DNA of 64,000 bases. It comes from Macrostomum lignano (lineage: Eukaryota). Of the stretch, positions 18,501 through 63,400 are shown one piece after another. The DNA lies in contig NIVC01002100.1 of the NCBI GenBank assembly GCA_002269645.1, positions 62,001-126,000 on the forward strand. Direction: 5' to 3'. The translations under genes and the position numbers were made by a program. The first letter of the stretch is position 1, and each line of letters begins with the position of its first letter. The notes below the pieces were generated by a model. It was not told the DNA's origin and ran no database searches. It saw only the letters and a list, made by a program, of their open reading frames with translations.

Positions 18501-21398
18501 AGGAGAGAGGGTGAGCAGGAGAGAGGGTGAGCAGGAGAGAGGGTGAGCAGGAGAGAGGGTGAGAAGGAGAGAGGGTGAGCAGGAGAGAGGGTGAGCAGGA
18601 GAGAGGGTGAGCAGGAGAGAGGGTGAGAGAGGGTGAGAAGGAGAGAGGGTGAGCAGGAGAGAGGGTGAGAAGGAGAGAGGGTGAGCAGGAGAGAGGGTGA
18701 GCAGGAGAGAGGGTGAGCAGGAGAGAGGGTGAGCAGGAGAGAGGGTGAGCAGGAGAGAGGGTGAGCAGGAGAGAGGGTGAGCAGGAGAGAGGGTGAGCAG
18801 GAGAGAGGGTGAGCAGGAGAGAGGGTGAGCAGGAGAGAGGGTGAGAGAGGGTGAGCAGGAGAGAGGGTGAGCAGGAGAGAGGGTGAGCAGGAGAGAGGGT
18901 GAGCAGGAGAGAGGGTGAGCAGGAGAGAGGGTGAGCAGGAGAGAGGGTGAGAAGGAGAGAGGGTGAGCAGGAGAGAGGGTGTGCAGGAGAGAGGGTGAGC
19001 AGGAGAGAGGGTGAGCAGGAGAGAGGGTGAGCAGGAGAGAGGGTGAGCAGGAGAGAGGGTGAGAAGGAGAGAGGGTGAGCAGGAGAGAGGGTGAGCAGGA
19101 GAGAGGGTGAGCAGGAGAGAGGGTGAGAGAGGGTGAGAAGGAGAGAGGGTGAGCAGGAGAGAGGGTGAGAAGGAGAGAGGGTGAGCAGGAGAGAGGGTGA
19201 GCAGGAGAGAGGGTGAGCAGGAGAGAGGGTGAGCAGGAGAGAGGGTGAGCAGGAGAGAGGGTGAGAAGGAGAGAGGGTGAGAAGGAGAGAGGGTGAGAAG
19301 GAGAGAGGGTGAGCAGGAGAGAGGGTGAGCAGGAGAGAGGGTGAGCAGGAGAGAGGGTGAGAGAGGGTGAGAAGGAGAGAGGGTGAGCAGGAGAGAGGGT
19401 GAGAAGGAGAGAGGGTGAGCAGGAGAGAGGGTGAGCAGGAGAGAGGGTGAGCAGGAGAGAGGGTGAGAAGGAGAGAGGGTGAGCAGGAGAGAGGGTGAGA
19501 AGGAGAGAGGGTGAGCAGGAGAGAGGGTGAGCAGGAGAGAGGGTGAGCAGGAGAGAGGGTGAGCAGGAGAGAGGGTGAGCAGGAGAGAGGGTGAGAAGGA
19601 GAGAGGGTGAGCAGGAGAGAGGGTGAGAAGGAGAGAGGGTGAGCAGGAGAGAGGGTGAGAAGGAGAGAGGGTGAGCAGGAGAGAGGGTGAGCAGGAGAGA
19701 GGGTGAGCAGGAGAGAGGGTGAGCAGGAGAGAGGGTGAGAAGGAGAGAGGGTGAGCAGGAGAGAGGGTGAGAAGGAGAGAGGGTGAGCAGGAGAGAGGGT
19801 GAGCAGGAGAGAGGGTGAGCAGGAGAGAGGGTGAGCAGGAGAGAGGGTGAGCAGGAGAGAGGGTGAGCAGGAGAGAGGGTGAGCAGGAGAGAGGGTGAGC
19901 AGGAGAGAGGGTGAGAAGGAGAGAGGGTGAGCAGGAGAGAGGGTGAGCAGGAGAGAGGGTGAGCAGGAGAGAGGGTGAGAGAGGGTGAGAAGGAGAGAGG
20001 GTGAGCAGGAGAGAGGGTGAGAAGGAGAGAGGGTGAGCAGGAGAGAGGGTGAGCAGGAGAGAGGGTGAGCAGGAGAGAGGGTGAGCAGGAGAGAGGGTGA
20101 GCAGGAGAGAGGGTGAGCAGGAGAGAGGGTGAGAAGGAGAGAGGGTGAGCAGGAGAGAGGGTGAGCAGGAGAGAGGGTGAGCAGGAGAGAGGGTGAGAAG
20201 GAGAGAGGGTGAGCAGGAGAGAGGGTGAGCAGGAGAGAGGGTGAGCAGAAGAGAGGGTGAGAGAGGGTGAGAAGGAGAGAGGGTGAGCAGGAGAGAGGGT
20301 GAGCAGGAGAGAGGGTGAGCAGGAGAGAGGGTGAGCAGGAGAGAGGGTGAGCAGGAGAGAGGGTGAGCAGGAGAGAGGGTGAGAAGGAGAGAGGGTGAGC
20401 AGGAGAGAGGGTGAGCAGGAGAGAGGGTGAGAAGGAGAGAGGGTGAGCAGGAGAGAGGGTGAGCAGGAGAGAGGGTGAGCAGGAGAGAGCAGAAAAAGTT
20501 TTTCAACATGCCGGCTGCCCACCTGAGGGTGCAGCGCGAGCTGGCAGGTCCACCAGACGGGCGCCTTGGAGAAGCACTTGACGCGGTCCTCCTCGCCGGA
20601 GAAGTACAGGCCGTGCTGCGCGCTCTTCAGCGCCCACTGAACCCCATCGCCGGCGTACTCAATGATGAAGCGGGTCTCCGGGCCGGCCTCCTCGCTGGAG
20701 CAGGACACCAGACCGTCCTTGTCGGCGGACAGGAACCTGGCGGGTGGCGGGAGTCCGAGTTTGTGAAGGGATGATGATCATGAATGCTCTATGAAGGGAA
20801 TGGTGAATGCTCTATGAAGGGAGTGGTGAATGCTATATGAAGGGAGTGAATGCTCTATAAAGGGAATGGTGAATTGTCTATGAAGGGTTTGTGAAGGGAT
20901 GCTAAAGGGTCCATGAAAGGCTTGTGGAGGGTTTGTGAAAGGATGATGAAGGGTCGGGTTTGATGGGTTTATGGCTCATGAAGGGTCTGTGGAGGGAATT
21001 GTCACTTCAGGGCTGCTGAATGGTCAGGCAAGTCTGGCAGAATTCAGAAGCAGTGAAAGCAACTTCAAACTGGATTCACAAAACTTGAGGAGCAATCAAA
21101 ACTACCTGTTGAGGTGCGACTTCAGACAGACGGTTGACGGGTGCTCGGGGTCGGGCACCAGCACCCAGGTCTGGCGCATCTTCAGCGACGCTCCGGAGGC
21201 GTTGAGCTTGAAGCCGAAGGGCTCGGCAGTCAGGAACTTGCCGCTGGCGTTGCGCAGCCCCACCCGCCACTTCAGCGATTCGTCCGGGTCTCCGGCCTGC
21301 GGCTGCTGCAGTTTGGACGGGCCGTGGCCGTTGGTGCTGCCGGCCACTCCGTTGCCATTGGCAACCCGGCCGGGAATGACGCCGCCGTTCTGGTCCAT
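12590..21398 (-). CDS. FSCN: Fascin (singed) actin-bundling protein, about 522 aa, 7 exons
   Basis: Exons (minus): 21398-21106, 20736-20523, 17992-17741, 17592-17436, 15501-15342, 13713-13424, 12792-12590. Total 1569 nt in frame. Beta-trefoil motifs LKWRVGLRNASGKFLTAEPFGFKLNASGASLKMRQTW, QLALHPQVHV, ELFVLEDSYPQIAVKAFNGRYAS, LLNRPIVVFRCDFGFVG, and terminal CLWEY*. Confidence 0.95.
12860..13110. repeat. Degenerate AATCCC/ATCACC-AACTCT repeat in fascin intron 6
   Basis: Repeated CACAATCCCCAACTCT-like units. Confidence 0.8.
13200..13423 (-). repeat. ~19-bp tandem repeat of the fascin exon 6 5' splice site
   Basis: Plus-strand unit CAGGACTCACCCCAGCCCG, i.e. minus GGG|GTGAGTCCTGCGGGCT; about 11 copies abutting the true donor at 13423. 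Confidence 0.9.
13764..15260. repeat. 13-bp minisatellite (TACTCTAGATCCC)n, about 115 units
   Basis: Fills most of fascin intron 5; each unit contains the TCTAGA palindrome. Confidence 0.97.
15915..16940. repeat. 29-bp minisatellite (GTGCTTCAGTGTCCTGCTGCCAACCTCAG)n, about 35 units
   Basis: In fascin intron 4; 29-aa periodicity in the ORF track. Confidence 0.97.
18020..20490. repeat. 16-bp purine/pyrimidine-skewed minisatellite (GAGCAGGAGAGAGGGT)n, about 150 units
   Basis: Fills fascin intron 2; the sense strand of fascin is CT-rich (ACCCTCTCTCCTGCTC). Confidence 0.97.
20775..20990. repeat. Degenerate ~23-bp repeat (ATGAAGGGAATGGTGAATGCTCT) in fascin intron 1
   Basis: Several decaying copies. 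Confidence 0.7.
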
Positions 21399-47430: not shown

Positions 47431-48771
47431 AGGATCAACACAGGATCTCAAGGTGGCCCCACCTTCAAAAGCCAGGCTGGTGCAATACCACCATGCATGC
47501 AGTTCCCGAAGTCAATAGGCGGTTTGGCAGCGCTGTGCTTGGTGTCAGTGCTGCTATGCCGTTATCATATTTACGTAAATTCTATGCCAATATGTTCTCC
47601 TTCATCACTAGCTGTTTTGCGTGGCTTATCAGGCCGTTTGGGGTTTTTTAATGGCTTTTTAACTGAGGCATTCGTGCCAACATTGTATTAAAGACCTCTC
47701 GCTAATTGTAAAAAGTATTTAATGTATTGTCCGTTTTTATTATCAGTAGAATCTTCACAGCTACTATGAGTAGGCTGGTAAAAATTGATGCGCATCATTC
47801 GATTATTTTGTAATTAATTTTGTGAGATAAATTTCTGTGAAAATTTAGCATGCATACAAGCGTATCCCTTTGTTGCGGATGCCTACTGTTAGTAGGCGGA
47901 TTTGCGTATTCCGATTGCTATTATTTTACAATTTGCACCAATGATATCGAAATCGGTTCCCAACCAAATCGATGCTGTGCGTTTTTTAGAAATAGACTAT
48001 CAATCAGTTTTTACCAGTACTAATTACTTTTAGTAATATGCCGTTCTTCTTACGAGTATTGATAGCCTCCGCACTCCACCAGCCCGATGTACAATAAATG
48101 CGATGCTCGCGTATTTTGCTAATCCCAAGCAGGCCTTTTCTGCGCTAAACTCGTTTCCGACAGGCGTTCCTGTGGCAGCTCTCTGCTTTTATTCTGAGAT
48201 AGCGGAACTTCAATAAATTCCCAGTTGCTGGGGGAGCAGGCGGCAGTTTTGATGCTTCAACATCAAATGTCAGGACCCGTCTGTCTGGCGGGGGGTTCGC
48301 TCGGATTCGGGAGAAGCGCAGCAGGCGCCGGTTTCAATCAGTTCCGATTCTCCTCTTCCCGACTGTCTCAACGGCTGCTGTTATCTGCGTGGCAATCGCC
48401 GCTACCAGGCTGTGCGCCGATTCTCATCTACTTGTCAGGAGGCTGCCACAGCTGACAGGTGGAAGACGGAGTTCCGTCGGTAAATATTTGAGCAGCGTGC
48501 CGAACTCAGCTGTCTGTCGGGGCTCTTCGGGGTTTATTTTTAGGGCCGGGCCGGCGCTGGGCCTGGGAGCTGCGAGCGGGCAACGAAGCCAATTCGACAC
48601 AGCTGTCGGTCTGGGGGTGGCCGCCGTGACGTGCTGGCCGGCAGGAAGTCCCCTGCGGCAGATTTTTCACTCTGAATTCCGACTTGTCTCGGTCGTTCAG
48701 ATCTTTCAAGGGCGGTTGAGTGGCTCAGCAGTGACGCGTCTGGTTCTTGCGCTTTTGGCGCGAGAAACGTG

Positions 48772-49745
48772 GTCTGGGTCTTGTGCACTGAGTGTGTACA
48801 TAGCAAGTCTGGGTCTTGTGCACTGAGTGTGGACATAGCAAGTCTGGGTCTTGTGCACTGAGTGTGGACGTAGAAAGTCTGGGTCTTGCGCACTGAGTGT
48901 GTACATAGCAAGTCTGGGTCTTGTGCACTGAGTGTGGACATAGCAAGTCTGGGTCTTGTGCACTGAGTGTGTACATAGTAAGTCTGGGTCTTGTGCACTG
49001 AGTGTGTACATAGCAAGTCTGGGTGTTGTGCACTGAGTGTGTACATAGCAAGTCTGGGTCTTGTGCACTGAGTGTGTACATAGTAAGTCTGGGTCTTGTG
49101 CACTGAGTGTGTACATAGCAAGTCTGGGTCTTGTGCACTGAGTGTGTACATAGCAAGTCTGGGTCTTGTGCACTGAGTGTGTACATAGCAAGTCTGGGTC
49201 TTGTGCACTGAGTGTGTACATAGTAAGTCTGGGTCTTGTGCACTGAGTGTGGACATAGAAAGTCTGGGTCTTGCGCACTGAGTGTGTACATAGCAAGTCT
49301 GGGTCTTGTGCACCGAGTGTGTACATAGCAAGTCTGGGTCTTGTGCACTGAGTGTGTACATAGCAAGTCTGGGTCTTGTGCACTGAGTGTGTACATAGCA
49401 AGTCTGGGTCTTGTGCACTGAGTGTGTACATAGCAAGTCTGGGTCTTGTGCACTGAGTGTGTACATAGCAAGTCTGGGTCTTGTGCACTGAGTGTGTACA
49501 TAGCAAGTCTGGGTCTTGTGCACTGAGTGTGTACATAGCAAGTCTGGGTCTTGTGCACTGAGTGTGTACATAGCAAGTCTGGGTCTTGTGCACTGAGTGT
49601 GTACATAGCAAGTCTGGGTCTTGTGCACTGAGTGTGTACATAGCAAGTCTGGGTCTTGTGCACTGAGTGTGTACATAGCAAGTCTGGGTCTTGTGCACTG
49701 AGTGTGGACATAGCAAGTCTGGGTCTTGTGCACTGAGTGTGTACG
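48772..49745. repeat. 35-bp minisatellite (GTCTTGTGCACTGAGTGTGTACATAGCAAGTCTGG)n, about 28 units
   Basis: 35-aa periodicity in three minus-strand ORFs. Confidence 0.97.
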
Positions 49746-50100
49746 AGTACCTGCCTGGTGACTAGAAGCCTGGGCCGCTGTGCATTCCGTGTGTGCCTTC
49801 GTACGTGTGCGAGTGCGTGCTCGGGGGTCAGTGAGATGGGCACGGCTGCTTGCCAATCGACTGTCGAGCGGCAGTGCCAGGAATCAAAAGGCCCCTACTT
49901 GAAACATCTTGCTCAGAATGACGACAAACGCGAGCTGCGTTAGGAATTGTCTGAATACCTAATCTCGTTTAATAAAACTGACTTCTGAAAGATGTGCATG
50001 GTTATTACATGATCATGGCTCCCTCCAGAGACGTTTCGCCACAAAAGTGGTTGCTCTATGCTCTTGCATTTGCCCCTTTTGTGGCTTAAAGAAGGAAGCA

Positions 50101-50457
50101 GCGGCGCACCTGTGTCTAGGACGGACGAGCTGCTGAACTCCCCGGACCTGATCGTGACCTAGCTTGTACGAGCTCTATGTTCGTGACTTCGTCCGGGACT
50201 CAGGCTGGATAACGATTGCAAACGACACTCTCTTACTTTTAAATTGGACCGCCGTTCAGCCGACGAATGACTTTATCCGTCGATTTAATGTAAAAGTACA
50301 TACATTTATTTGTCGAAAACATCGGCCGACGTCGGATTGCTGTACGGGCGAGGGGTCGGTACAGCCCAAGACTATAGTTGTCTGTCCTGTTCTTAGCTTG
50401 GGGTTGCGATAGGGCCTCTTGGTCTAATCGCGGGTGTCCTGTGTCCGTCGGTAGCAA
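50101..50457 (+). mobile_element. 5'-truncated, diverged 3' fragment of a LINE related to the 36.2-41.6 kb element
   Basis: GGACGAGCTG, CTTCGTCCGGGACTC, CCCAAG(A/G)CTA and CTTGGGGTTGCGATAGGGCCTC...CCGTCGGTAGCAAG align collinearly with the ORF2 end and 3' UTR of the full-length element. Confidence 0.85.
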
Positions 50458-51969
50458 GGGCACCTGCCAATTAACCAACAAAGACTTTGCGTCTTTCCTA
50501 CACATCTCTGATCGAGTTGCATTAGCGTGAGAGTTCAAGTTAGAAACCAGTAATTTTTCTTTGAATCCGTAAGTCTTTCATTTCGAATATAGACTGCCTG
50601 CCTTGTATTGATGTGTAAAGTTGTTCACAAATAAAAGCCGTTCACGAGGAGATCTTGCATCTCCGGCACACATCGGAAGCATATCTAGCTGTGAGCTGTG
50701 AGTCGCGTGCTCAAGCCCTGGAAAGCCCAAATCTATCAAGCTCTACTCAGCAGGCTGGCGCATGCAATTCATCTCTGCGGATTTGAGCTGACAGACACTT
50801 CAAATCCGTTGCGTTGAACCAGACTTGGTGAGAAGTTCGATAATACTGGAAATCCCCGCGGTATTAAATTGGGCACCAGATGAGCGTTCCGGTGGGGTGC
50901 AGTTGCCGCAGATCGTTATTCGGTCTGGCAGCTCTCGTCTGTCTCTTGAGAAGCTTCTCAACATATCTAAAAGTTGTCAAGATTATTCTTTGGTATTGGA
51001 TGACTTGAGTATCTGTGGCATTGGGCGCACGTTGTCGGTCAGACATTGTCGGTAGTTCTTAATTTTCTAGGCAATTTCAGTACGGTAGGCCCGATTGACT
51101 CACAGGTCGATTGATCTTAGTTCTAGTTTTAAAACTCTTTATTACTTGAGATTCATCCTACTCTTAAGCCAATCTTTGAAAAAATGTTTTGTAATCAATT
51201 TTTATATCACAAGAAATTCTGGCAAGGTGCAAAAAAAGCAGAAAGCAGAGAGCTGCCTGTCTGGAAGCAAATTAATCCACCTGTTTGAGCTTGCGCACCC
51301 GGCCAACTGCGCTTCCCGGACATCAATACTGTTTACGAATGAGCTCGGATTTCTTTTGTTGAAGACAGGAAGCTGGGAGTTTCCTCATTGAGAGAGCAGC
51401 CTGTTTTCTTTACTGATATTTGTTGCACAAAGTCTGTTCACGAGCTGCAGTTATTGTCAATGAGGATATTACGTCTTTCATTAAACCACATCCTGTGCGA
51501 TTTCTCATCCGGGAAAAAACAAGCAAGAATATATTTTATAGAAAATTTGTGTCTTATTTTCCCTGCCTTGCCAGGCGTTGTCACAAATCCCGAGGCACGC
51601 AGATATCGCAGGCTGAGCCTCGAGACCCTCGGGGATTTCTCATTTCGATAATGTTTCGCAGTCGGTAGCGAGACCCCGAGACTGCAGAGGCTCCGAGAGA
51701 AGCGCCATGCAGCTGTCGTCACGCAACGAATGAGGTTGGGGGAGTCGGCGGCCACTGGATAGCAGGCACGGGGCGAATCGAGTGATTCATCGCAGCCCGA
51801 GGCCATGGAGCAAGCTGAGAGGCGAGGCCGAGGGGAGCGGGGAGGGCAGGCGTCAAGAAGTGTGACGGCAATGCGGATTTGAGGATCAGCGCGTGAACTT
51901 GGACCAGCTGCTTCCCGATTTTTTCATCTGACGCGATTTCTAAGGAGAAGCAGAGCAGGGAAAAACACC

Positions 51970-53142
51970 ATGGCAGCGACTGTGAACATCAGCCTGGTCA
52001 ACAGCCAGCGACTGCTCAAATTCTTCGAGATTGCCACGACCCACGAACTGGCCAAGAGCCACATTGCGCTGCTGGGCCTCTACTCGCTCATTGGCCTGGT
52101 GTCCATCCTTGGCAACGGTCTCCTGCTCTTTGCTATTCTCCGCACCCGTCGAGTGTCAGAGAAGTATTTTCTGTTGAATCTAGTGCTCACCGACTTGCTC
52201 ATTACTGTCATTTGCATTCCCGGCACTTGCCAGAAGTTCTTCTCTAACGTGTGGCACCTGGGCGACTTGCTCTGCCGCCTAGCGAACGCGGCTATGGTAT
52301 CCACCGCGGGCGCGGCGATCTTCAACCACACGGCTATGATTCTTGAGCGCTCGCTGGGCGTCAATGCCAGCCGCATCGCCACCAACAGCCGCGACACGCG
52401 TGCCACTTCTCTGAAGATGATCGGCGCCGTTTGGTTGCTGGCGATCGCTTACGGCTCTCCCGTAGCCGTGCTCACCAGCGTCTCGGATGTGAGCTCCCTG
52501 CTCCGCCTGGCCAGCCTAAATGTGAGCAACCTGCCGCCTATGTGCATCAACAGCATCAGCAGTCCAATAGCCAGCGTTGTCTACGATGCGGTGGGCATGC
52601 TGCTGCTCTACATCGTGCCCTTGTGCGTCATCATCGCGGCCTACGTACGGATCGTCCGCACTGTCCGCGAGGTCAACTCGCAGTTGGTAAAGTTCAACAA
52701 CAGCGTCACCAACCGAAGCAAGAAGATTGTCCGTTTGGCCGTCACCATGGCGCTGATGTTCGCCGTCTCCTGGCTACCGCTGCACCTTAGCATGCAGGTG
52801 AAGAACATCGACATTCTCATCAGCAGTGTGTCCGGTCGAACTGTTCTGTTGTACAGCGCCGACAGCAAGTTCTCCGTGCTGCAGGACGTGTTCAACTGCC
52901 TTGGCCTGTCCAACTGCGCCGCCAACCCGGTTTACTTGTTTCTCTCCTGCCCAAACTTTCGCAAGACCCTCGTCCGTGCCTACAGGGGCGGCGGCGGCGA
53001 CGGAGTCGGCATCGGCGGTGGCCCCGGCAGCGTCTCCATGAGGGGCCGGCCTTCGCTCAACCGGTGCAGCTCCGCCAACTGCAGCAGCGGCCGTAGGGCT
53101 TGCGGAGAAGCCACGATAACCTGCTGCGAGAGTCAGCTATGA
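51970..53142 (+). CDS. Intronless rhodopsin-family neuropeptide-receptor-like GPCR, 390 aa
   Basis: GLVSILGNGLL (TM1), FLLNLVLTDLL (TM2), WHLGDLLC (ECL1), ILERS (TM3), LYIVPLCVIIAAYVRI (TM5), FAVSWLPLH (TM6), NCAANP (TM7). Confidence 0.9.
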   Translation: MAATVNISLVNSQRLLKFFEIATTHELAKSHIALLGLYSLIGLVSILGNGLLLFAILRTRRVSEKYFLLNLVLTDLLITVICIPGTCQKFFSNVWHLGDLLCRLANAAMVSTAGAAIFNHTAMILERSLGVNASRIATNSRDTRATSLKMIGAVWLLAIAYGSPVAVLTSVSDVSSLLRLASLNVSNLPPMCINSISSPIASVVYDAVGMLLLYIVPLCVIIAAYVRIVRTVREVNSQLVKFNNSVTNRSKKIVRLAVTMALMFAVSWLPLHLSMQVKNIDILISSVSGRTVLLYSADSKFSVLQDVFNCLGLSNCAANPVYLFLSCPNFRKTLVRAYRGGGGDGVGIGGGPGSVSMRGRPSLNRCSSANCSSGRRACGEATITCCESQL

Positions 53143-53629
53143 AATGCTGCATGCCGCGTTTTTGTCTACTGATAGTAGAGTGAATAGCAAATACAGGACA
53201 AGAATTCAGCATCTCGACCCCACTTTTAGAGACTAGTCCCTGCTACTAACTTAAATATTCGAAAATTTACTATAAGAATATATTTATGCATCAGTTGCAA
53301 AATCTCAATACCGATAAAAATCGTTGAAAAACACTTTCGGTTAGTTTTGAAACGCTTCGTCTATGTTTAGTTCGTTTTAGTTCTTAATGTTCTTTTTTGT
53401 CAAGCGCTGTACTAAAAATTAGGCGCACGTACTCCTAAAAACGCTTAATCAGATGCTGCAAAAATCCCTTAATGCACCTCTATTATTAACGGCACACAAC
53501 TTTGAAAACTAAAATAAACACTGCATATTTTAGCATATTGTTGTCGCTTATTTACATGTACAATCCTGGGGGGATGGTTTGGTGCCGCCAGCGCAAGCTG
53601 TGGGGTGCCATTGTATGGGACGCCATCGT

Positions 53630-53745
53630 AGGGGCGCCAGCACCAAGGGGCGCCAGCACCAAGGGGCGCCAGCACCAAGGGGCGCCAGCACCAAGGGGCG
53701 CCAGCACCAAGGGGCGCCAGCACCAAGGGGCGCCAGCACCCAGGG
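53630..53745. repeat. 16-bp GC-rich tandem repeat (GGGGCGCCAGCACCAA)n
   Basis: About 7 units. Confidence 0.92.
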
Positions 53746-54951
53746 GGTCCGAAGTTAAATTGTCTCACTGCCTCCGCTTTCTTTCAAAAGCATTGAGTTC
53801 ATTAGATTTATCCAGTGGAATGAGCTAAGCGCTGTCAAAAACAAAGTGTTTTTGTTGGTTAGATTGCTATTACTGTAAATACTCGCAAGTTTGGCCCAAG
53901 GTAAATTCCATAGAAAATTTAGTAATGAAGGCAGCCTAGGCAGGCCAAGCAAGCGTGAGACTGGTGGCTTGTATCTAATGTACTCAAGTAACTCAACTAC
54001 TCATTGTAAGCGCGTAAGTTACTCAATCTAAGCACTTTTCAAGGGCCAGAGCAGAGAAAGTTAGTTTACTGCCAAAAGCTCACACATTTCTGCTCAGCAT
54101 CGCTGGCAATTGTTTATCATAGAAGAGCAAGGACAGCTCAGCCAGATTTCCTTCTGCTGGGTCAAATTTTGAATTTTCACCTCTGCGCACTTGCAGTTTA
54201 ACAGCGCTACCTATCCAGGTATCAGCTCAATAGGACTGACCGATGCCAATTCTTTATCTGTGCCGATGACCGGACTAAACCAGTTGCCAACCAGTTGAGA
54301 GGGCCGGCCGGCTGCCAAAGGAACTCGCTAAAGTTGTTTCTGTTTACGCCGCGCCTGTTTAGCCGCCCGCCCCCCTATCTATCGCACTGAATCACATGAC
54401 TTCAACTGCAAAAGACTCGTGATTACACATTGTCAGCAGCCACGCAAAAACTAATAAATACCGGTAACAAGAGAAGCGGCGCCGCCGCCAGATAATTCAG
54501 AGAAAATTTGTACAATTGGGATAAGTGGGGCCGAACTCTCGGATTTATTCGGAGAAATGCAGTCAGCCAGCGACATGACCGCTACAGGTGAGCCTCTCTC
54601 GGTTTTATACAGACCGCTAGGCGTTATCAAACGCCCTTCCTTCACCTTACCCTCTGCTGCTCCGCTAGTCGTGTAAAATGAACGTCCTTGGTTTTTTCCA
54701 CTGTCTCGCCGTCCCAAGTGCCAGGCCGTCTACAATGCAAAGCCAGCTTTGGTTTTTTCCATCAGCGGAATAAAACTGCCCGCCCGCTTTCGCATGCAAG
54801 CGCGCGTGGGGTGGCGGGGCGCTCAATGTACATCGCCGGGGGGACCAGACTTGAACGTACATTACCGGGGCCAAGGATAGACTTGGATTTCCTTCCACTC
54901 GGCAATCTAACACTGGGTGGGGGTTGTAGCATTTTCTTGAAACCACTCCCC

Positions 54952-54958
54952 TATAAAA
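54952..54958 (+). promoter_or_regulatory. Putative TATA box of the PMT gene
   Basis: CCCCTATAAAAGGG about 105 bp upstream of the ATG of the short first coding exon (55060). Confidence 0.55.
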
Positions 54959-55059
54959 GGGCGCCCCCGGCCTGTACACTAGACAATCGCCGCCAGCAGT
55001 CTATTTTTAGCACTCGTCTCTCTGAAAAGGCAATAAACAGATTGAGTTGGCCCCACTCA

Positions 55060-57124
55060 ATGGAAGCCAAAAGCGGTAAGAGTGCTACTAATACGAGCGT
55101 ACTAAATAAATCTAGAGTTTTAACTAAATGTAAGCTTTGCAGATATCATATCAATTAGCCTTAAATGCACCGGGCATTCGGGTGAGCGTGAACGTGCAAT
55201 CCTGCGTTTCACTTGTACCTTATGACATTGTGTACTTTTACTTTACTTTTACAGTGAACATGAACATGCGGGTATTATCGACCCTTTAAGAAATTATTTA
55301 GGTTTTGAAGCCCTTTTTGCTACTGGTATTGTGCACTAATCTATGCAAACACGGAATGCTATGACCCAACCCTGCTACTCCAGAGACAAGAAAGAGCATG
55401 GCCAGCTACTGGCAGGAGCACGGCCAGGCAACGATGGAGATGATGATGCTCGATGAGAACGCGGCAACCATAGCGGAGAGGGAGGCGCTGGAAGTTCTTG
55501 GCATGCTGCCGAACATTGAGGGCATGTCGGTAGTGGAACTGGGAGCGGGAATCGGCCGGTTCACCCAGTACTTGGCACCGAAGGTCGCCCACCTGGAAGC
55601 CTACGACTTCATGCAGAACTTCATTGACAAGAACCGCGAGCTGAATGGTCACCATGGCAACGTTGAGTTCGGAGTAGCAGACGTAACCAAGCTCAACCTC
55701 AGTCAAAACAGATTCGACTTTATATTCTCGAATTGGTTGTTCATGTACCTGGATGACTCCGAGGTTGCGGGGGTCTTCAGGAAAGTCCTTGATTGGCTGC
55801 GTCCAGATGGCTACTTCTTCTTCCGCGAGTCCTGCTTCCACAAGTCCGGCTCAGTGGCCCGGACTGACAACCCCACGCGCTACCGGACGCCCCAGCAGTA
55901 CAATGAGCTTCTGCTTGAGGCCGCGGCTGGCAAAGGCTGCAAGTTCAGCCTGCTGTACGCCAGGCCGAGCCGGACCTACATCAGCTACAAGCAAAACCGC
56001 AACCAGATGTGCTGGCTGGTGCAGAAGGTCCCGGCGGTTGCGGACGAGGTCCGGCGTCAGCGCAAATCCGAGCGACTATTCTCGGAGGAGAGCATCGGCA
56101 AGCTGGAGAAAATCTTCGGTAAGAGCTTCTTGTCCAACGGTGGCATCTCAAGCACGCGCGAGCTGTGCGACAAGCTTGGCGTGAAATCCGGCGAGCGAGT
56201 GCTGGATGTGGGCTGCGGACTTGGCGACACCTCCATGTACCTGGTGCAGGAGTACGGGGCCAACGTCATCGGGATCGACATCTCCGCCCCGATGATCAGC
56301 ATCGCACTGCAACGGGCTAACCAGCTGAGCGTGCCCAATGTGAGCTTATCTAGAGAGTTCCAGGGTTTTTAAAAAATCGTTTTATTTAAAATTAAACCTG
56401 ATTTTCATTTCGTTTCGCATCAGGTTCTGTTCGAGGTCGCAGACATTGAGACCTACGCCTTATACGAGGAGTCTTCATTTGATGTTATCTACAGCAGAGA
56501 CGTGCTGCAATATGTTGGTGCCAAAGACAAGGTGCTAGCCAAGTACTACGTAAGTTCTTCTCGATTCACTTAATCTGCCTTCGTTTTACTGCGTCGAAAT
56601 TGTCTCATGGAGTGATTTTTGCACTGTGTTAGAAGAATCCATGTGTCAACAACCTTGAGCAATTTTAACCATTGCAGAAATGGCTGAAGCCGGGCGGCCG
56701 CCTGCTGATCTCAGACTACTGCGTGCAGAGCGGCGAGAGCCAGGAGCAGACGGGCCTCGACAGCTTCTGGTCGCGGCGACCGCACCGGCTGTGCACTGTC
56801 GAGGACTTCGCCTCCATGCTGACGCAAAATCGATTTGCCACGCTTGCCACAGAGGACATCACGCCGTGGTGCCAGCAGATCACCATGATGGAGCTCGACG
56901 TGCTGGAGAAGAACAAGAAGCTGTTTGTCGATGTGAGTCATTTGAAAATTGAAAATAATTTCCCTGATCCCGAATTATGCAGCTCCTTTTCATCAATTCA
57001 CCTCCAGGAGTTCGGCGAGAAACGTTTCGAGCTGACCAAATCGAACTGGCGCCGTCGGCTGGCGATGTGCATGAACCAGGAGCTGCTGTGGATCCTCTTC
57101 AGCGCCATCAAGCGTGAGGAATGA
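55060..57124 (+). CDS. PMT: Two-domain phosphoethanolamine N-methyltransferase (PEAMT/PMT), about 489 aa, 5 exons
   Basis: Exons 55060-55075, 55384-56339, 56424-56549, 56678-56932, 57008-57124 (1470 nt, in frame). N domain: MMLD, VVELGAGIGRFT, FSNWLFMYL, FFRESCFH, NPTRYR. C domain: IFG, VLDVGCGLG, YSRD, WLKPGGRLLISDYC. Confidence 0.93.
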
Positions 57125-58419
57125 ATAAGCAATGCCCGCTAACAAACAATTTGATTTAAGAAACCTATCCGCTCGTATCCTTGATGCCTTGATATGCTTG
57201 TAGTCTGGCATTAAATGCTACTCGTACCAATCTGTGTTCTGCTATGCTTCAACTACAATCGGTGTTATTATGTTCCATGGTAATGCGGGACCAGGTCAAT
57301 GTCGTACTGTACTAGTGATTTCAGCATGAATATTTTTGATTGCGTGAATCAGCTGATTTCATCTTTGTTATACTCGTACTCGAATGTTTGTACATTTAGG
57401 ATTCGCCAAGTGTAATTTTGCTATTCTGATTGACAGGCCGCCAAATCTAACCTATTCTACGTCTAGGAACTCGGCTCTCGGTTATAAACTCGCGTTTTTA
57501 CATTTATGGCGCTTTAACAGAATCATTGCATTGGTTTTTTGGCTGTACATCGTATCTCTCTAAGGGTGCTTGATTACTTTTTCATTGAAAATAATAAAAT
57601 CTGCGATTCGCATGCTTATCACTCGAAATGCACAATTTCCAATATTTCAAAGATTTACCGAGACTGAGCTGAGATATTCTCTAGACAGCAGACGTAATGG
57701 ACGTCTGTCTTACTCGGCTACGGGCATAAGCAGTTCAGACAGTGGATCAGATGGAGAGATGAGACTCTCATTCTTGGTCAGGCAAGATTGCATGAAAGCT
57801 CGGAATGCGAGCGAGCAACGTGCTTGCTACGTCGGCCCAATATTCCTATCCGAGCCCTTCTGCACCGGACAGACAGAGCATTTCTATGCAATTCTGCATG
57901 CACATTCACGTGTGCATCTCCCACAGCTCAGTAATTCCGGCTCTTAGCTCTGTATCATAATGCGTTCGCGTCTTTCTTTTGCTGCAGAAATTTAAATGGC
58001 CAGGCAGTTTTTTATAGATTTTTCATAGCTAGACGTTTTATTTTAGTAGTTATTAGTAGTATTTTCCGTGTCTTATACATAGATCTTCGAGTACACCAGT
58101 ACTCTTTCAGAATAAACCCGAATAAACTGTTTCTTTCTCTACTATGTGAACTGCGAGCTAAATTTGACTTGTAGCTCTTTTAACTACAGTAAAATGCGAA
58201 TCGCATGCTGTCTGGATGCTTCTACGAGAAAGCTTGCTTGTACGAGCTGTTGACGCTATCGACTTTTGGCTTGTGCGTAAATGACACGTACAATGAGCGA
58301 GGCAGTGCAACCGGACAGCACTTAGTGAGGTCACTTTTGACGAGCCAAATTTCCCGTCAAACTGAAGATCACGAGAAATGTATATTATCCTGATTTCCAC
58401 TAGCCTCGTCATCGGTTAT

Positions 58420-59388
58420 TTAGTCTTCAGTTGCCGTGATTGAGCAGGCCGCCAGGCCAGCAGCCACAGCCGCAGTGAGGCTGGCCAACACGCAGCAGAT
58501 GAAGCCGGAGCTGAGCACCTCGGAAGTTTCACCGTGACGCAGCACAGCGCTGTACATGGTGCCAAGAAACACAGACCAGGCGATGATTGACAGCACGGCT
58601 GCGGGAAAAAAGGGGGGCAATCCCAATGACCCCCGAATACATAGGGAAAGTGGTCTGTGTGTTTTAGAGAGCTCCTGCCAAAGCATCCACAGAACAAAGC
58701 GCAGAAGCAAATGGTTCCACATTCCGACGCTGAATCTCACCGACTCCGATGCACAGGGCGGCCACGGTGGCGGCCAGCACCCGCTCCTTGTACCGGTGGC
58801 GCACTAGCCCGCGTTCGCCGCACGCGTCAATTACCAGCTTGATGCTCGCCGTCAAGCCAAGGCCCAGACAGGCGAACAGCAGCACCCGGGCTGCCACCAA
58901 CGCTCCGTTGTTAGCCACGGTCAGCCGCCTCAAGGTGGCCTCGGACAGCACCGGGTGGTCAGCGCCCAAACGCCAGTTGGCCCGCAGGCCGGTGCTGTTT
59001 TCTGGCGCCTCCGGCGTCTCCAAGCCGACAGTGCGGCGGTCAGCCAGGACGGTCTCGTGGTAAACTAGCACCTCGCGCGGCCGGTGATGGTAGTAGAAAT
59101 GGTAGAATGCGACCCCTGGCGGAAAATTTATGCCAATTTAAGTGCCCGATGGACATGAATGCGTCGGATTGATCTGAGTCGCTAAAGCTTTACATTGTAG
59201 CCGTTTCTCCACTCACTTTTCGTCTCCCACAGCCCGACGGCCACGAAGGTGGTGGCGGAGGCGTTTCCTGTCAAGCCTGGCCGCGGCACCGAGGCCTCGA
59301 TCAGCAGCCAGCGGTCGCTGAAGAGGCCGATGGTGGCCAGGCAGACGCAGGCGGAGAGGAAGAACACGAGGGTGCAGCTGTGCAGCAT
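58420..59388 (-). CDS. Claudin/PMP22-superfamily-like four-TM protein, about 241 aa, 3 exons
   Basis: Exons 59388-59217, 59115-58741, 58598-58420, in frame. TM1 followed by SDRWL and a GLW motif; four hydrophobic segments. Confidence 0.72.
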
Positions 59389-60435
59389 TGTGTTCGTGGG
59401 TCGAATATTTTCTGAACTCTTTTTTAATTTTGTGAAATATCAACTGCAGGTATCGGCTTGGCTCACGTTCGCAAGCAATTTTTTCAGCGAAATATAGCTG
59501 ACGCCACAGCTGTGCCGAGTGCAGCAACTGCAGAATATCGAAAGCCTGAATCGATATCGAGGAAAGAGTGGCGAGCGACTTCTGCTCACAGTTGAGGAAG
59601 CGGGCGGGAAGACGCTTCAGTACAAGACAAAGCATTGGTGACGGCCCTGTCTTGTGTGCTGAGCTTGCAGAGCAAGGTAGAGGTGGGAACTTATTGGCTC
59701 TGTGGAGGGCGACTTTTCTCTAAATTTTCACAGCTTAACACCGCTTTCAGATTTTACCTTCTCTAATGTGCTTTTCAAATAGAACAGGCGCGATAGGAGT
59801 GCTATGTAAGTACCGTACGAGTATATGGACAAAACAGCCAGAGCATATATTTTGCATGTTGAAGGCAATGCCATGTCGTGAAATACGAGCGTATAAAAAA
59901 TGCTCGTCAAGAATGTCACTAGCTAAAAAACCTTTGTTTCGATTGCCTGCGGTTACCGCCACAATCTCCAGTCCATAAATTGTTCTGCCTCTGTAAGAAG
60001 CGAATTTGGAAGTCGTCAGAGTAAACTTGTAGCCGTTAGCATGACTGACTATGATCTAGATGTGTATTTCATTTAGAAGGGCATCGCTTAAACAATGTTT
60101 TATTGCACTTTAGTAACCGTTATTACAAATGAGTAGAAAAAAGTAGAAGGCGATATGCTCTATGAAAGTATTTTTAACATAACAATACGGAAAACTGCTG
60201 CAGTCCTTATCGCAAAACACTATTGGCATAACTATTGAGCAAAAAAGCATCCAACTATTGCTACTACCAATTCACACATGCGCTTGAGCTACAGACGTAA
60301 GAAAAAATTATCCCTTCACCTACGATAGAATTCTGTGACAGTTAGATGAAGGCACCAGCGGCGGCTGAGAACGCTGAGAACGAGCTCTTTTTTCAGATCT
60401 TCCTTCAGATCGGATGACAGGACTGGGTCCGGGAT

Positions 60436-63400
60436 TTAGGAAGCCTCTTCTGACTGATTTTTGGCGAATCTGATGAACACCTGCATGAACAGATCAGAAA
60501 AGCTTAGCCCAAAGCTTTAAATATTTAGACAGATAATTACCTGTGCGGTCATTATTGCATCATCCATTAAATAACTTTACCTGGTCGAGAGTGGTCTGGT
60601 TGACGCTGTAGTCCAGCACCAGACCGTTGTCCTTGAGCCTCTGGACGCTCTCAAAGATGGTCCTGAGCCTCACGGTCTGCTTCAGCTGGTACTGCAGCAC
60701 AGCCGCGTGGTTCTCGCACAGCATGGCGTCCGGAAAGGCCGACACGAACGCTTCGTGAGCTCTCTCCAGCTGACCTTCCGTGTTATCGACGCTGGCGGAG
60801 GCCGAGGCAGAGGCGGATGTCGCCTCCTGCGACTGCGGCTGACGAACGCGCAGGAAGATGGTGAACCCTTGGCCGAACTTGTTCTTCAAGTGCTGAGGAC
60901 TGCCGATGCACTGCAGTCTGCCGTTCACCTGTGTGAGATGTTAGTGAAGGTATGGTGGGGAAAGTGAGCTGCTTGGCTGCTGCATGAGCTGCAATACCAG
61001 CACTGAGCTGCTCTCACCATGATGGTGAGTCTGTGACACAGCGCTTGGCAATCCTCCATGCTGTGAGTTGTGAGAATGACGCACGAGCCAGCAGTGACCA
61101 TGCGTTGGATGCAGCGCCAAAGGAATCTGCGAGCTCCAGGGTCCATGCCGGCAGTTGGCTCGTCCAGGAACACGATGGGCGGGTTGCCGATGAACGCGAT
61201 GCCGCAGGAGAGCTTGCGCTTGTTGCCTCCGCTGTACTCCTGAGTGGTCTTGTCCAGGTGCGCCTCGATGCCCACCCTGCGGTGTCGAGGTGGCCCTGCG
61301 TACAATCTTCTCATTTCAAAAGCGCACTTTTTAGAGTAACATTCATTCAATTTCAATTTCATTTCAATCGTTTCACTTATTAGAGTAACGCGAGCAAGAG
61401 CAAGATCGGTGACGAACCTCTTTGAGATGGTCTCCACCAGTTGGTCGATGTCCTCCTCCTCCACTCCTCGAATCCTCGCGTACAGCTGCAGCGTCTCCCT
61501 GCCGGTCAGCAGCGGCAGCAGCGCATCGAACTGGGGACAATATCCCAGCTGCTTGTGCACCTCGAGAGCCTCCGTCAGGATTGAGAAGCCGCCGACTCGA
61601 GCGTCTCCGCTCGTCGGTGTGAGGTCACCTGGGGCAACGAGAGTGAAAATAAAGTGGAAAGCAAATCGGTAGGACCTCACGAATCTACCATTAACGACTC
61701 ACCAGTCAGCATCTTGAACGTGGTTGTCTTGCCAGCACCGTTGACGCCCAAGAAGCCGAAGCACTCCTGAGACTTCACTCCCAGACTGATGCCCTTGACG
61801 GCGGCTCTCGGTCCGGAGCTGGTGCTGAAAATCTTGACGAGCCGACGCAGCTCAAGCAGGTTTTCATCGCTCTTAGCACCCTCGACCTTCGCAGCTTCAG
61901 CGCGCACATCATCATCGATCTCTGCTGTTTCCATTCGCACCAGCGACTGATCATACTCGGAGCGGTAGAAAAAGCGGAAAAAGCGCGAGGACACGAGGCC
62001 CTGCTTGCAGCAGCAGTTGTACTCGAGCAGCAGTACGAATGCAAAGTACACAACACTTTCCACTACCATACAGAGCAGATATCGTCCTGTAGCATTCCAT
62101 GCGCTCTGGTGCACGTCGAATCCCATAAACCGTTTTATTGGAGCAGATTTAAGTCTGGAATCTTTTAGAAGTGTGCCGAACCTGATTGAGACCTGATGGA
62201 ACAAATTGTTATTATTACAGATTAGGTTACAATCCAAGAAATGCGAATATATAGCATTATATATATAGATATAATTAGCAATACATTATTCATGCGCATG
62301 TCCTAACTGACTAAAGTGTTTTTGGCGTGAATTCTAAATTTTGGTCTGCGCAACTTACCTGATAGTAGACGTTTAACTCCATTAGTGATTGGCCCAAGCA
62401 AAAGTGAGGCAGCGGTAGGAAAGCCATTTTCAGAATATCTGCAATGCGGAGAGCTGTGGTGTCATGGTTCTCTAGACCAACCAGTCGTACAATCGCGACG
62501 GACATTGTTGTCGTGAACCCGATGCCCAGGTTCAGGCATGACAGCATGGTGAACGCCTTGCTCGGAACGGTCAGCACCCAGCTGAAGGGATACATGAGCG
62601 GCGCACTGGCGAACCCGAACAGGACCACGGTCAGTAGGAACGGCACCAGGGACTCCTTTCCAATAAACTCGTAGCTTCTGAATGCAACGAAGATCAAAAT
62701 AACGATGGTCAGCGGTACTATGTAGTTCAACAGGTTCCAGATGTGGTTCACGACCCAGTACATAGTCGGGTTGATTCCGGACACGAACTGCAAGTGCTTA
62801 GCGTTTGTGGTTTTTTCCGAGATGAGGAAGATCACAAAGCTGGCGGGAATGAATGACAGGGCGAAGATGATGGACACCACTGTCATGGCCGATACCATGG
62901 TGTTCGCGCTGAGCACGTTCTGTACGTATGTTGTACGAAAAGTGATCGGGTGAGTCCAGCCTGACACCCCGATCGCTTCTGCCGAGCCGACGCTCCGGTT
63001 GGCGAGAGTTCGCACGATAGAATTGGTGAGCGTATTTAGATATGCAGGGCCAGACAAGTAACCGTGATTGTCGTACCAGACTTGGTTTACAATTGCTTCG
63101 GAACTGCTCTGCTGACGAAAGCTTTTCAGTAGTGATAGCAGCTGCTCTAGGAAACTATAGTTGAAAAACAACACGGCGTGCCATTTATCTTATTTATCGA
63201 TATATTCTTATTTATCTATCTGATTAATCTATCTGTTTATTATCAAATAAACAAATATCATTGGGTTTTGTGACTTTTCAAGCAGGATTTTCAAATAAAT
63301 GTAGGCTTAAATTTACTGTTTAAGTAAACCGATGCTATTGGTCAACTAAAATATAAAATAATAATTGATATTGGAATAAACTATACAAGTAGCATACACA

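Follow-up and report, generated by a model that had tools for sequence, protein, structure and literature searches.

A di-domain phosphoethanolamine N-methyltransferase of the flatworm Macrostomum lignano with a fully conserved first and a remodelled second methyltransferase domain

Phosphoethanolamine N-methyltransferases (PMTs) have drawn attention both as stress enzymes of plants and as targets for antiparasitic drugs, and three forms of them are known, namely the plant enzymes with two active domains, the nematode enzymes split into PMT-1 and PMT-2, and the single-domain enzymes of Plasmodium. Here we describe a PMT gene at 54557-57124 (+) of a 64,000-nucleotide stretch of the free-living flatworm Macrostomum lignano (contig NIVC01002100.1, positions 62,001 to 126,000 of the forward strand; the whole stretch is called the window and is numbered from its first letter). 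The N-terminal methyltransferase domain (MT1) of its product retains every position that is invariant in the family, and the C-terminal domain (MT2) has exchanged the catalytic dyad and most of the phosphate-binding residues while keeping the S-adenosylmethionine (SAM) site. We regard it as fairly probable that MT1 converts phosphoethanolamine (pEA) to phosphomonomethylethanolamine (pMME), that MT2 lacks the canonical second and third methylations, and that MT2 is kept as a structural module which possibly binds SAM or S-adenosylhomocysteine (SAH).

The closest described systems define the residues in question. PfPMT of Plasmodium binds the phosphobase via Y19, Y27, Y160, Y175, Y181, R179 and K247, with Y19 and H132 forming the catalytic dyad (PMC6705855, PMC6661969). 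In the related PvPMT the dyad residues Y16 and H129 are located 3.2 and 4.8 Å from the SAM methyl group, the phosphate is contacted by Y24, Y157, Y178 and R176, and SAM is held by D82, D107, the backbone of I33 and G60 (PMC4357015). In the nematode enzyme HcPMT1 the residues Trp14, Met26, Met27 and Trp123 constrain the phosphobase site to pEA (PMC10269165). Furthermore, the soybean enzymes GmPEAMT1 and GmPEAMT2 rescue the yeast cho2 opi3 mutant only together with a phospholipid methyltransferase and carry out only the step from pEA to pMME (PMC8353235).

The flatworm gene comprises five exons with an intact open reading frame (ORF), and every intron is bordered by GT-AG. Its 494-residue product matches the M. 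lignano database entry PAA60868.1 (BOX15_Mlig000722g1; cluster member P0288) with 100% identity, which validates the gene model. Window positions 48078-63002 have a second genomic copy on contig NIVC01002688.1 (locus L002) with ~97.5% nucleotide identity over more than 14 kb, whose PMT product PAA55922.1 (P0001) differs from the window protein in two residues (E22D, M28V). The synonymous divergence of the PMT gene between both copies is ~3%, and the second copy, called the homeolog below, is consistent with a homeologous or allelic duplicate in the M. lignano genome.

As judged from its sequence, the gene encodes a plant-type di-domain PMT (EC 2.1.1.103) of ~490 amino acids with two class I SAM-methyltransferase domains in tandem (the Pfam domain is matched twice). 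In a phmmer search of the PDB sequences AtPMT1 (5wp4) and AtPMT2 (5wp5) were the best matches, both over the full length (E=3e-117 and 1.5e-112; 41% identity), and the Plasmodium PMTs matched residues ~241-491 with E ~1e-43 (PfPMT: 33% identity, E=8e-44). Nematode PMT-1 matched the N domain only and nematode PMT-2 the C domain. The AlphaFold2 model of the near-identical P0001 has a mean predicted local distance difference test (pLDDT) score of 88.4 and a predicted template modelling (pTM) score of 0.87; Foldseek ranked 5wp4 first and superimposed the C domain on the PfPMT structures with a template modelling (TM) score of 0.89 and a root mean square deviation of 2.1 Å. Only two loops of the model are uncertain, residues 161-180 in MT1 and 391-410, the phosphobase loop of MT2. 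MT2 is modelled as a complete PfPMT-like fold.

The residues of MT2 were mapped in four ways, all of which agree: by pairwise alignment with phmmer to PfPMT and to AtPMT1, by MAFFT with 118 sequences, by hmmalign against a profile of MT2 and by MAFFT L-INS-i. The PfPMT numbering is fixed, since the PDB entries of the mutants Y19F (3ujd) and H132A (3ujc) pin the positions. PfPMT Q18, Y19, Y27, H132, Y175, Y181 and K247 correspond to L242, F243, L251, Y359, F401, H407 and R473 of the flatworm protein (full-length numbering), and S37, D61, G63, D85, D110, D128, Y160 (Y385) and R179 (R405) are unchanged. A first-pass annotation, made from the letters of the window, had proposed exactly these seven replacements as well as the retention of the SAM motif, Y160 and R179; the alignments bear out both, and the motifs it quoted (RLFSEES, SRDVLQY, VLDVGCGLG, GIDIS and ISDYC) all lie where it had placed them. 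For comparison, the canonical set comprised 116 further di-domain PMTs, from vertebrates (fish, amphibians, reptiles, lamprey and hagfish), from invertebrates (hemichordates and a brachiopod) and from plants and algae. Y19, Y27, H132 and Y181 are invariant in 116/116 of these enzymes, Y175 and Q18 occur in 115/116 each and K247 in 114/116. The substitutions are genuine and far beyond chance, and they are not the normal state of canonical animal PMTs.

On the DNA, the lid substitutions L242 (CTA, for Q18), F243 (TTC, for Y19) and L251 (CTG, for Y27) are located at 56076-56105 (+). Y359 (TAT) at 56511-56513 (+), the position of the catalytic His132, is a single transition away from CAT and is common to the homeolog and to a paralog described below. 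The phosphate-binding loop at 56765-56785 (+) carries F401 (Y175), the retained R405 (R179) and H407 (Y181), and R473 (CGG) in place of Lys247 is found at 57056-57058 (+), again in common with the paralog. The retained SAM-contact and core residues, S261 (S37), D285 (D61), G287 (G63), D309 (D85), D336 (D110) and D355 (D128), lie within 56133-56501 (+), the contacts being those of the PvPMT structure (PMC4357015).

Thus, the MT2 dyad, which is Tyr19 and His132 in 116/116 canonical enzymes, is F243 and Y359 in the window protein, and from the phosphate-binding set of Y27, Y160, Y175, R179, Y181 and K247 only Y160 and R179 survive, so that four of these six PfPMT side chains are gone (the papers give five Tyr and Arg/Lys contacts besides Tyr19). 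The residues of the SAM site, i.e. the GxGxG motif, D85, D110 and the S37 loop, are present. Because the Tyr19-His132 dyad and most of the phosphate-binding side chains are missing, MT2 probably no longer runs the sequence from pMME via phosphodimethylethanolamine (pDME) to phosphocholine. The exchanges Y19F and H132A were reportedly found by Lee et al. in 2012 (JBC) to impair PfPMT strongly. A further exchange was observed at D292 (56229-56231, VGCGLGDTS): canonical PMTs have a Gly after the GxGxG SAM motif (GIGGG) with an invariance of at least 97%, whereas both M. lignano paralogs carry Asp there, as does a variant enzyme of the sea urchin Diadema.

That the protein is nevertheless an ordinary three-step PMT, whose MT2 retains the conversion of pMME and pDME to phosphocholine, appears unlikely to us. 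The overall architecture and the SAM site are intact and D128, Y160 and R179 are present, and an alternative PfPMT mechanism centred on D128, said to have been proposed by Saen-oon et al. in 2014, would count in favour of such an activity (the structure of the D128A mutant, 4r6w, is among the PDB sequence and fold matches). It would, however, have to proceed with seven positions changed together that are invariant in 114-116 of the 116 canonical enzymes, with 24 of the 78 invariant MT2 columns altered, and with neither the three Tyr hydroxyls that hold the phosphate nor the dyad in place (PMC4357015, PMC6705855).

The contrast to MT1 is pronounced. Counting as invariant those columns which are at least 97% invariant among the 116 canonical enzymes, the window protein retains 52/52 columns in MT1 vs 54/78 in MT2, and its identity to canonical PMTs is ~50% in MT1 vs ~34% in MT2. 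In canonical enzymes the conservation of MT2 is no lower than that of MT1, with identities of 62% (MT1) and 64% (MT2) between Lingula and Xenopus and of 50% and 61% between Lingula and moss. The HcPMT1 pocket residues W14, M26, M27 and W123 align to the conserved W20, M31, M32 and W128 of MT1; together with Y132 these active-site residues are encoded at 55410-55748 (+), with W20 at 55410-55412, M31/M32 at 55443-55448, W128 at 55734-55736 and Y132 at 55746-55748. The intact N-terminal domain, which the first-pass annotation had noted, is corroborated by the invariant columns as well as by these pocket residues. With respect to its complete conservation MT1 would be the working catalytic unit of the enzyme, most likely catalysing the step from pEA to pMME.

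A second M. lignano gene (P0002/P0290, Mlig021435) encodes a protein of 480 residues with 56% identity to the window protein and is its closest other relative among the matches listed (database of 5.8 billion clusters), relatives being taken from the best 120 or best 150 matches of protein-cluster searches. All further relatives listed there share at most 44% identity, with 40-44% for canonical di-domain PMTs. The paralog retains 52/52 invariant MT1 columns and 40/78 invariant MT2 columns, and it has Q18L, Y27L, H132Y, K247R and eight other departures in common with the window protein. Since these changes are common to both, the remodelling of MT2 predates the duplication that gave rise to the two M. 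lignano paralogs. In the paralog R179 has additionally become D, Y19 has become M and the F-x-S-x-G-G (S37-G-G) loop, whose backbone holds the SAM carboxylate, is lost; its model shows a confident Rossmann core and a weak lid and loop (low pLDDT). The phosphobase pocket is thus not conserved between the paralogs, which argues that the selected property they share is the core fold and not the pocket. At the paralog loci (L001, 6621-12244; L003, 1749-6214) the coding sequence is split into six exons by introns that lie at other positions and are much longer (up to ~2.4 kb), vs the five exons and short introns of the window gene, and one paralog intron sits exactly at the shortened MT2 lid motif.

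Both genes exhibit the signature of constraint on MT2. The window gene and its 97.5%-identical homeolog differ at 12 coding positions, three synonymous and two nonsynonymous ones in MT1 and seven synonymous and no nonsynonymous ones in MT2, where nonsynonymous sites outnumber synonymous sites by 3.4 to 1 (P=3e-5); over the whole coding sequence (CDS) the ratio of nonsynonymous to synonymous changes per site (pN/pS) is 0.056. Likewise, the paralog copies Mlig021435g3 and g2 differ in MT2 by nine synonymous and five nonsynonymous changes (pN/pS 0.17, P=0.001). Evidently, MT2 is under purifying selection and is not a decaying remnant. Between the paralogs, for which synonymous divergence (dS) is saturated, the ratio of nonsynonymous to synonymous rates (omega) is 0.24 in MT1 and 0.30 in MT2, and within MT2 it is 0.20 in the Rossmann core, 0.45 in the lid and 0.32 in the C-terminal part. 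The SAM-binding core is thus no less constrained than MT1, and it is the former phosphobase-pocket parts that drift.

Similar replacements were found in other animals. An exhaustive HMMER search of 1.84 billion representatives yielded the best 150 relatives, among which 66 MT2 domains had both dyad columns (19/132) aligned. These comprise 53 domains with Y/H, four with Y/Y, four with F/Y and five with other pairs. The F/Y carriers are the window protein, Homarus americanus (P0122, XP_042227688), Myxine glutinosa (UPI003590090E) and one further eukaryotic contig. Phe19 thereby occurs only with Tyr132 (4/4) and never with His132 (0/54), and since the Y/Y state exists as well, this suggests that H132Y came first and Y19F second. 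H132Y is also present in the sea urchin Diadema (XP_071494735) and the sponge Sycon (XP_065185080), and nemerteans have N (Tubulanus) or Q (Lineus) in this column. Variant animal PMT paralogs hence carry H132 to Y, often with Y19 to F and Y27 to L or I. As in the window protein MT1 is mostly kept in the variant paralogs of Homarus, Myxine, Diadema, Sycon and the nemerteans, with 51/52 invariant columns in Lineus, 48/52 in Tubulanus, 43/52 in Diadema and 36/52 in Sycon; these enzymes differ from the flatworm protein in being of independent origin, each with further changes of its own.

An ancient clade of F/Y paralogs shared by these animals was considered and rejected. In a neighbor-joining (NJ) tree of MT1 the variants group with their own taxa (bootstrap of 94% for the M. 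lignano pair, 81% for Homarus with decapods and 63% for Myxine with Eptatretus), and F/Y monophyly was recovered in 0/300 bootstraps. The MT2 tree, in which long branches dominate, was not used. Because the variants sit with their own taxa and are never monophyletic, the F/Y changes are independent in flatworm, lobster and hagfish. In decapod crustaceans the MT1-intact, MT2-variant form of Homarus (P0122) stands beside forms with the opposite pattern, a degenerate MT1 and a kept MT2 Tyr/His dyad (Panulirus P0148, Penaeus P0155). This pair of forms resembles the nematode PMT-1/PMT-2 split and appears to be undescribed.

The decapods also bear on the question of a partner enzyme. In a division of labour as in nematodes the window protein would take the PMT-1 role, and the pathway would be completed by a so far unseen protein of M. 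lignano that is PMT-2-like and has its MT2 intact, an arrangement which overlaps with the interpretation we favour. It has an established precedent in nematodes (PMC10269165), and the reciprocal-looking forms of the decapods are in line with it. For M. lignano we nevertheless consider this explanation unlikely. No reciprocal paralog with an intact MT2 was present among the best 120 or 150 matches of the protein databases, which are not the genome itself, and no search was aimed at an intact-MT2 or PEMT partner; both M. lignano clusters found there (P0001/P0288/P0289 and P0002/P0290) have an altered MT2. The 64-kb window holds a single PMT locus, with tblastn hits of 120 homologs at 55365-57130 only. 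Subfunctionalisation with the need for a partner, one of the two explanations the first-pass annotation had offered, is therefore not supported by the M. lignano paralog among the matches listed, which is not reciprocal, shares H132Y, K247R, Q18L and Y27L with the window protein and has the more degenerate MT2 of the two.

The other explanation of the annotation, a C domain re-purposed for another methyl acceptor, is part of a wider reading, in which MT2 is still an active SAM-dependent methyltransferase with a remodelled pocket and either has a different acceptor or follows an MT1-like mechanism with Tyr359 in the place of His132. We take this possibility seriously while holding it to be the less probable one. 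All side chains that contact SAM, as well as D128, Y160 and R179, are kept, the exchange of K247 to R is conservative, purifying selection on MT2 is very strong, and in the model both the lid and the overall fold resemble PfPMT. The SAM-methyltransferase fold has, moreover, been re-used for other chemistry, e.g. in SpnF, which is among the fold matches. MT1 domains themselves bear Tyr in the column that corresponds to His132 (SNWLFMY vs SRDTILH), as found by MT1/MT2 alignment to AtPMT1, by hmmalign and by a profile-profile alignment with a probability of 99.6%. Furthermore, Phe19 is coupled to Tyr132 in all four of its occurrences among the 66 domains, and its carriers are not monophyletic (0% bootstrap). 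On the other hand, R179, part of the lid and the loop for the SAM carboxylate are lost in the paralog P0002, no new pocket is common to both paralogs, the models show little order in the phosphobase loop, and a candidate acceptor could not be named. We also considered F243 and L251 as copies of the W/M pocket of MT1 and rejected this idea; outside the Rossmann core the profile-profile alignment of the two domains is of low confidence and does not support an equivalence of the lids, and the correspondence of His132 with Tyr is the only one between the two domains that stands. A more specific proposal would take Phe19/Tyr132 together with an aliphatic residue 27 as a recurrent alternative MT2 active site, SAM-binding and methyl-transferring by an MT1-like mechanism or on a new acceptor, which evolved independently in flatworm, decapod and hagfish; we put this forward only tentatively and consider it rather doubtful.

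In the reading that we prefer MT2 would likely be a non-catalytic module that supports MT1 by di-domain packing or folding and might additionally act as a SAM/SAH sensor. Phosphocholine would then be derived from choline of the diet by way of the Kennedy pathway, or from phosphatidyl-MME that is methylated as a lipid, the latter as shown for the soybean PEAMTs. Several points weigh against this reading. The complete set of SAM contacts, D128, Y160, R179, the conservative K to R exchange and an omega near 0 would be expected of a catalytic MT2 as well. As Tyr is the normal state of active MT1 domains at the His132 column, the exchange of H to Y need not be inactivating, and the recurrence of F/Y in independent lineages resembles a preferred alternative configuration more than random decay. 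Finally, we infer all activities from residues, and a structural need of MT1 for MT2 is hypothetical.

By architecture and descent the flatworm enzyme belongs to the plant-type di-domain PMTs, although two catalytic features that define their MT2, the dyad and the phosphate-binding set, are lacking. It shares the two-domain architecture and the length with AtPMT1 and AtPMT2, including a fully conserved MT1 and an MT2 with the same modelled fold and the same SAM motifs; it differs from them in the replaced MT2 dyad and in most of the phosphate-binding Tyr and Lys residues, and its MT2 is far more diverged than its MT1, the reverse of canonical PMTs. The two AtPMT domains are said to use different chemical mechanisms (Lee and Jez, 2017). 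The single MT2-type domain of PfPMT and PvPMT (3uj6-3ujd, 4iv0) has the same fold as modelled for the C domain of the window protein and binds SAM with the same residues; for all three methylations PfPMT relies on Y19/H132 together with Y27, Y160, Y175, R179, Y181 and K247, of which the window MT2 retains only Y160 and R179. The soybean enzymes GmPEAMT1/2 are, like the proposed flatworm enzyme, di-domain proteins with an MT2 that nevertheless perform the first step only (PMC8353235). Their MT2 catalytic residues are described as conserved (PMC8353235) and are replaced in M. lignano, and the comparison is one between plant and flatworm.

Nematode PMT-1 (HcPMT1, 4krg; BxPMT1, 6wlf; C. elegans PMT-1) likewise combines an MT1 that looks active and has these pocket residues with a C domain that has lost the residues for phosphobase methylation (PMC10269165). 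The proteins are, however, not orthologous, as the window protein has ~23% identity to HcPMT1 vs 40-44% to canonical PMTs and the M. lignano pair forms a branch of its own. The C domain of HcPMT1 no longer matches by sequence, in contrast to the window MT2, which is 33% identical to PfPMT, has kept its SAM site and is strongly constrained. The comparison with a vestigial PMT-1 domain, as drawn in the first-pass annotation, therefore holds for the loss of the phosphobase residues; it does not extend to the loss of SAM motifs typical of the vestigial PMT-1 C domain, since the SAM contacts of the window MT2 are kept under purifying selection. Judged by its residues the enzyme may work like nematode PMT-1, while being neither orthologous to it nor similarly degenerate. 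A literature search for publications on flatworm or other non-nematode animal PMTs returned nothing relevant.

The individual exons, all on the forward strand, are distributed over the two domains as follows. Exon 1 (54557-54587, +) contains the start codon, residues 1-10 (MQSASDMTAT) and the first base of codon 11, is directly followed by a GT donor and is identical to exon 1 of the annotated homeologous gene in L002; this exon and the acceptor at 55384 were placed by comparison with that annotated syntenic copy. Exon 2 (55384-56339, +) encodes the entire MT1 (~aa 16-226), the linker, the MT2 lid helices and the MT2 SAM motif I and post-I (VLDVGCGLG, GIDIS), with Pfam methyltransferase domains. 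Exon 3 (56424-56549, +) encodes the MT2 strands with D110 (ADIE), D128 and the H132 position (SRDVLQY), and exon 4 (56678-56932, +) the part of MT2 with Y160 (ISDYC) and the phosphobase loop (F401, R405, H407), which has low pLDDT in the model. Exon 5 (57008-57124, +) encodes the C-terminal helix and strand of MT2 with R473 at the K247 position, followed by the stop codon. The interval 56040-57124, to which the first-pass annotation had confined its MT2 description, is indeed the MT2-coding part of the gene including its three introns; the small upstream exon at 54557-54587 had been missed. An artefact, be it an incorrect gene model, a misassembly or a decaying pseudogene copy, can be excluded with near certainty in view of the intact ORF, the GT-AG introns, the identity of the product to an independent annotation, the recurrence of the same residues in the second genomic copy and partly in the paralog, and the low pN/pS of 0.056 over the whole CDS.

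The surroundings of the gene were inspected as well. A single-exon ORF of 390 amino acids at 51970-53142 (+), ~1.4 kb upstream of the PMT start codon, encodes a rhodopsin-family G protein-coupled receptor (GPCR; PF00001, E=2e-34). Downstream of the PMT gene a large gene for an ABCA-type ABC transporter is present with its 3' part at ~60400-63000 (-), assigned by synteny with L002 11895-14561, where a product of 2318 residues is annotated. Between the GPCR and PMT genes, at 53630-53746, the 16-bp tandem repeat AGGGGCGCCAGCACCA is present in ~7 copies; as the homeologous contig L002 has many more copies of it, the two genomic copies differ in copy number here. Many long minisatellites with units of 13-48 bp and up to 157 copies occupy window positions 7797-49744 (e.g. 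18017-20489, 13764-15260, 15928-16941 and 48772-49744), and the extreme GC skew (0.85) and AT skew in the composition profile originate from the 16-bp array GAGAGGGTGAGCAGGA at 18017-20489.

The PMT of the window is not a categorically new system. It represents a fourth PMT state in a free-living flatworm, in which a perfectly conserved MT1 is joined to an MT2 without the dyad whose SAM pocket is under strong selection, and similar states have arisen repeatedly in lobster, hagfish, sea urchin, sponge and nemerteans and form a natural evolutionary series. This series bears on the ways in which a catalytic domain becomes a pseudo-enzyme or gains a new function, on the dependence of MT1 on MT2 and on the synthesis of phosphocholine in PMT-bearing animals, and as M. 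lignano is amenable to RNA interference and transgenesis, these questions are testable.

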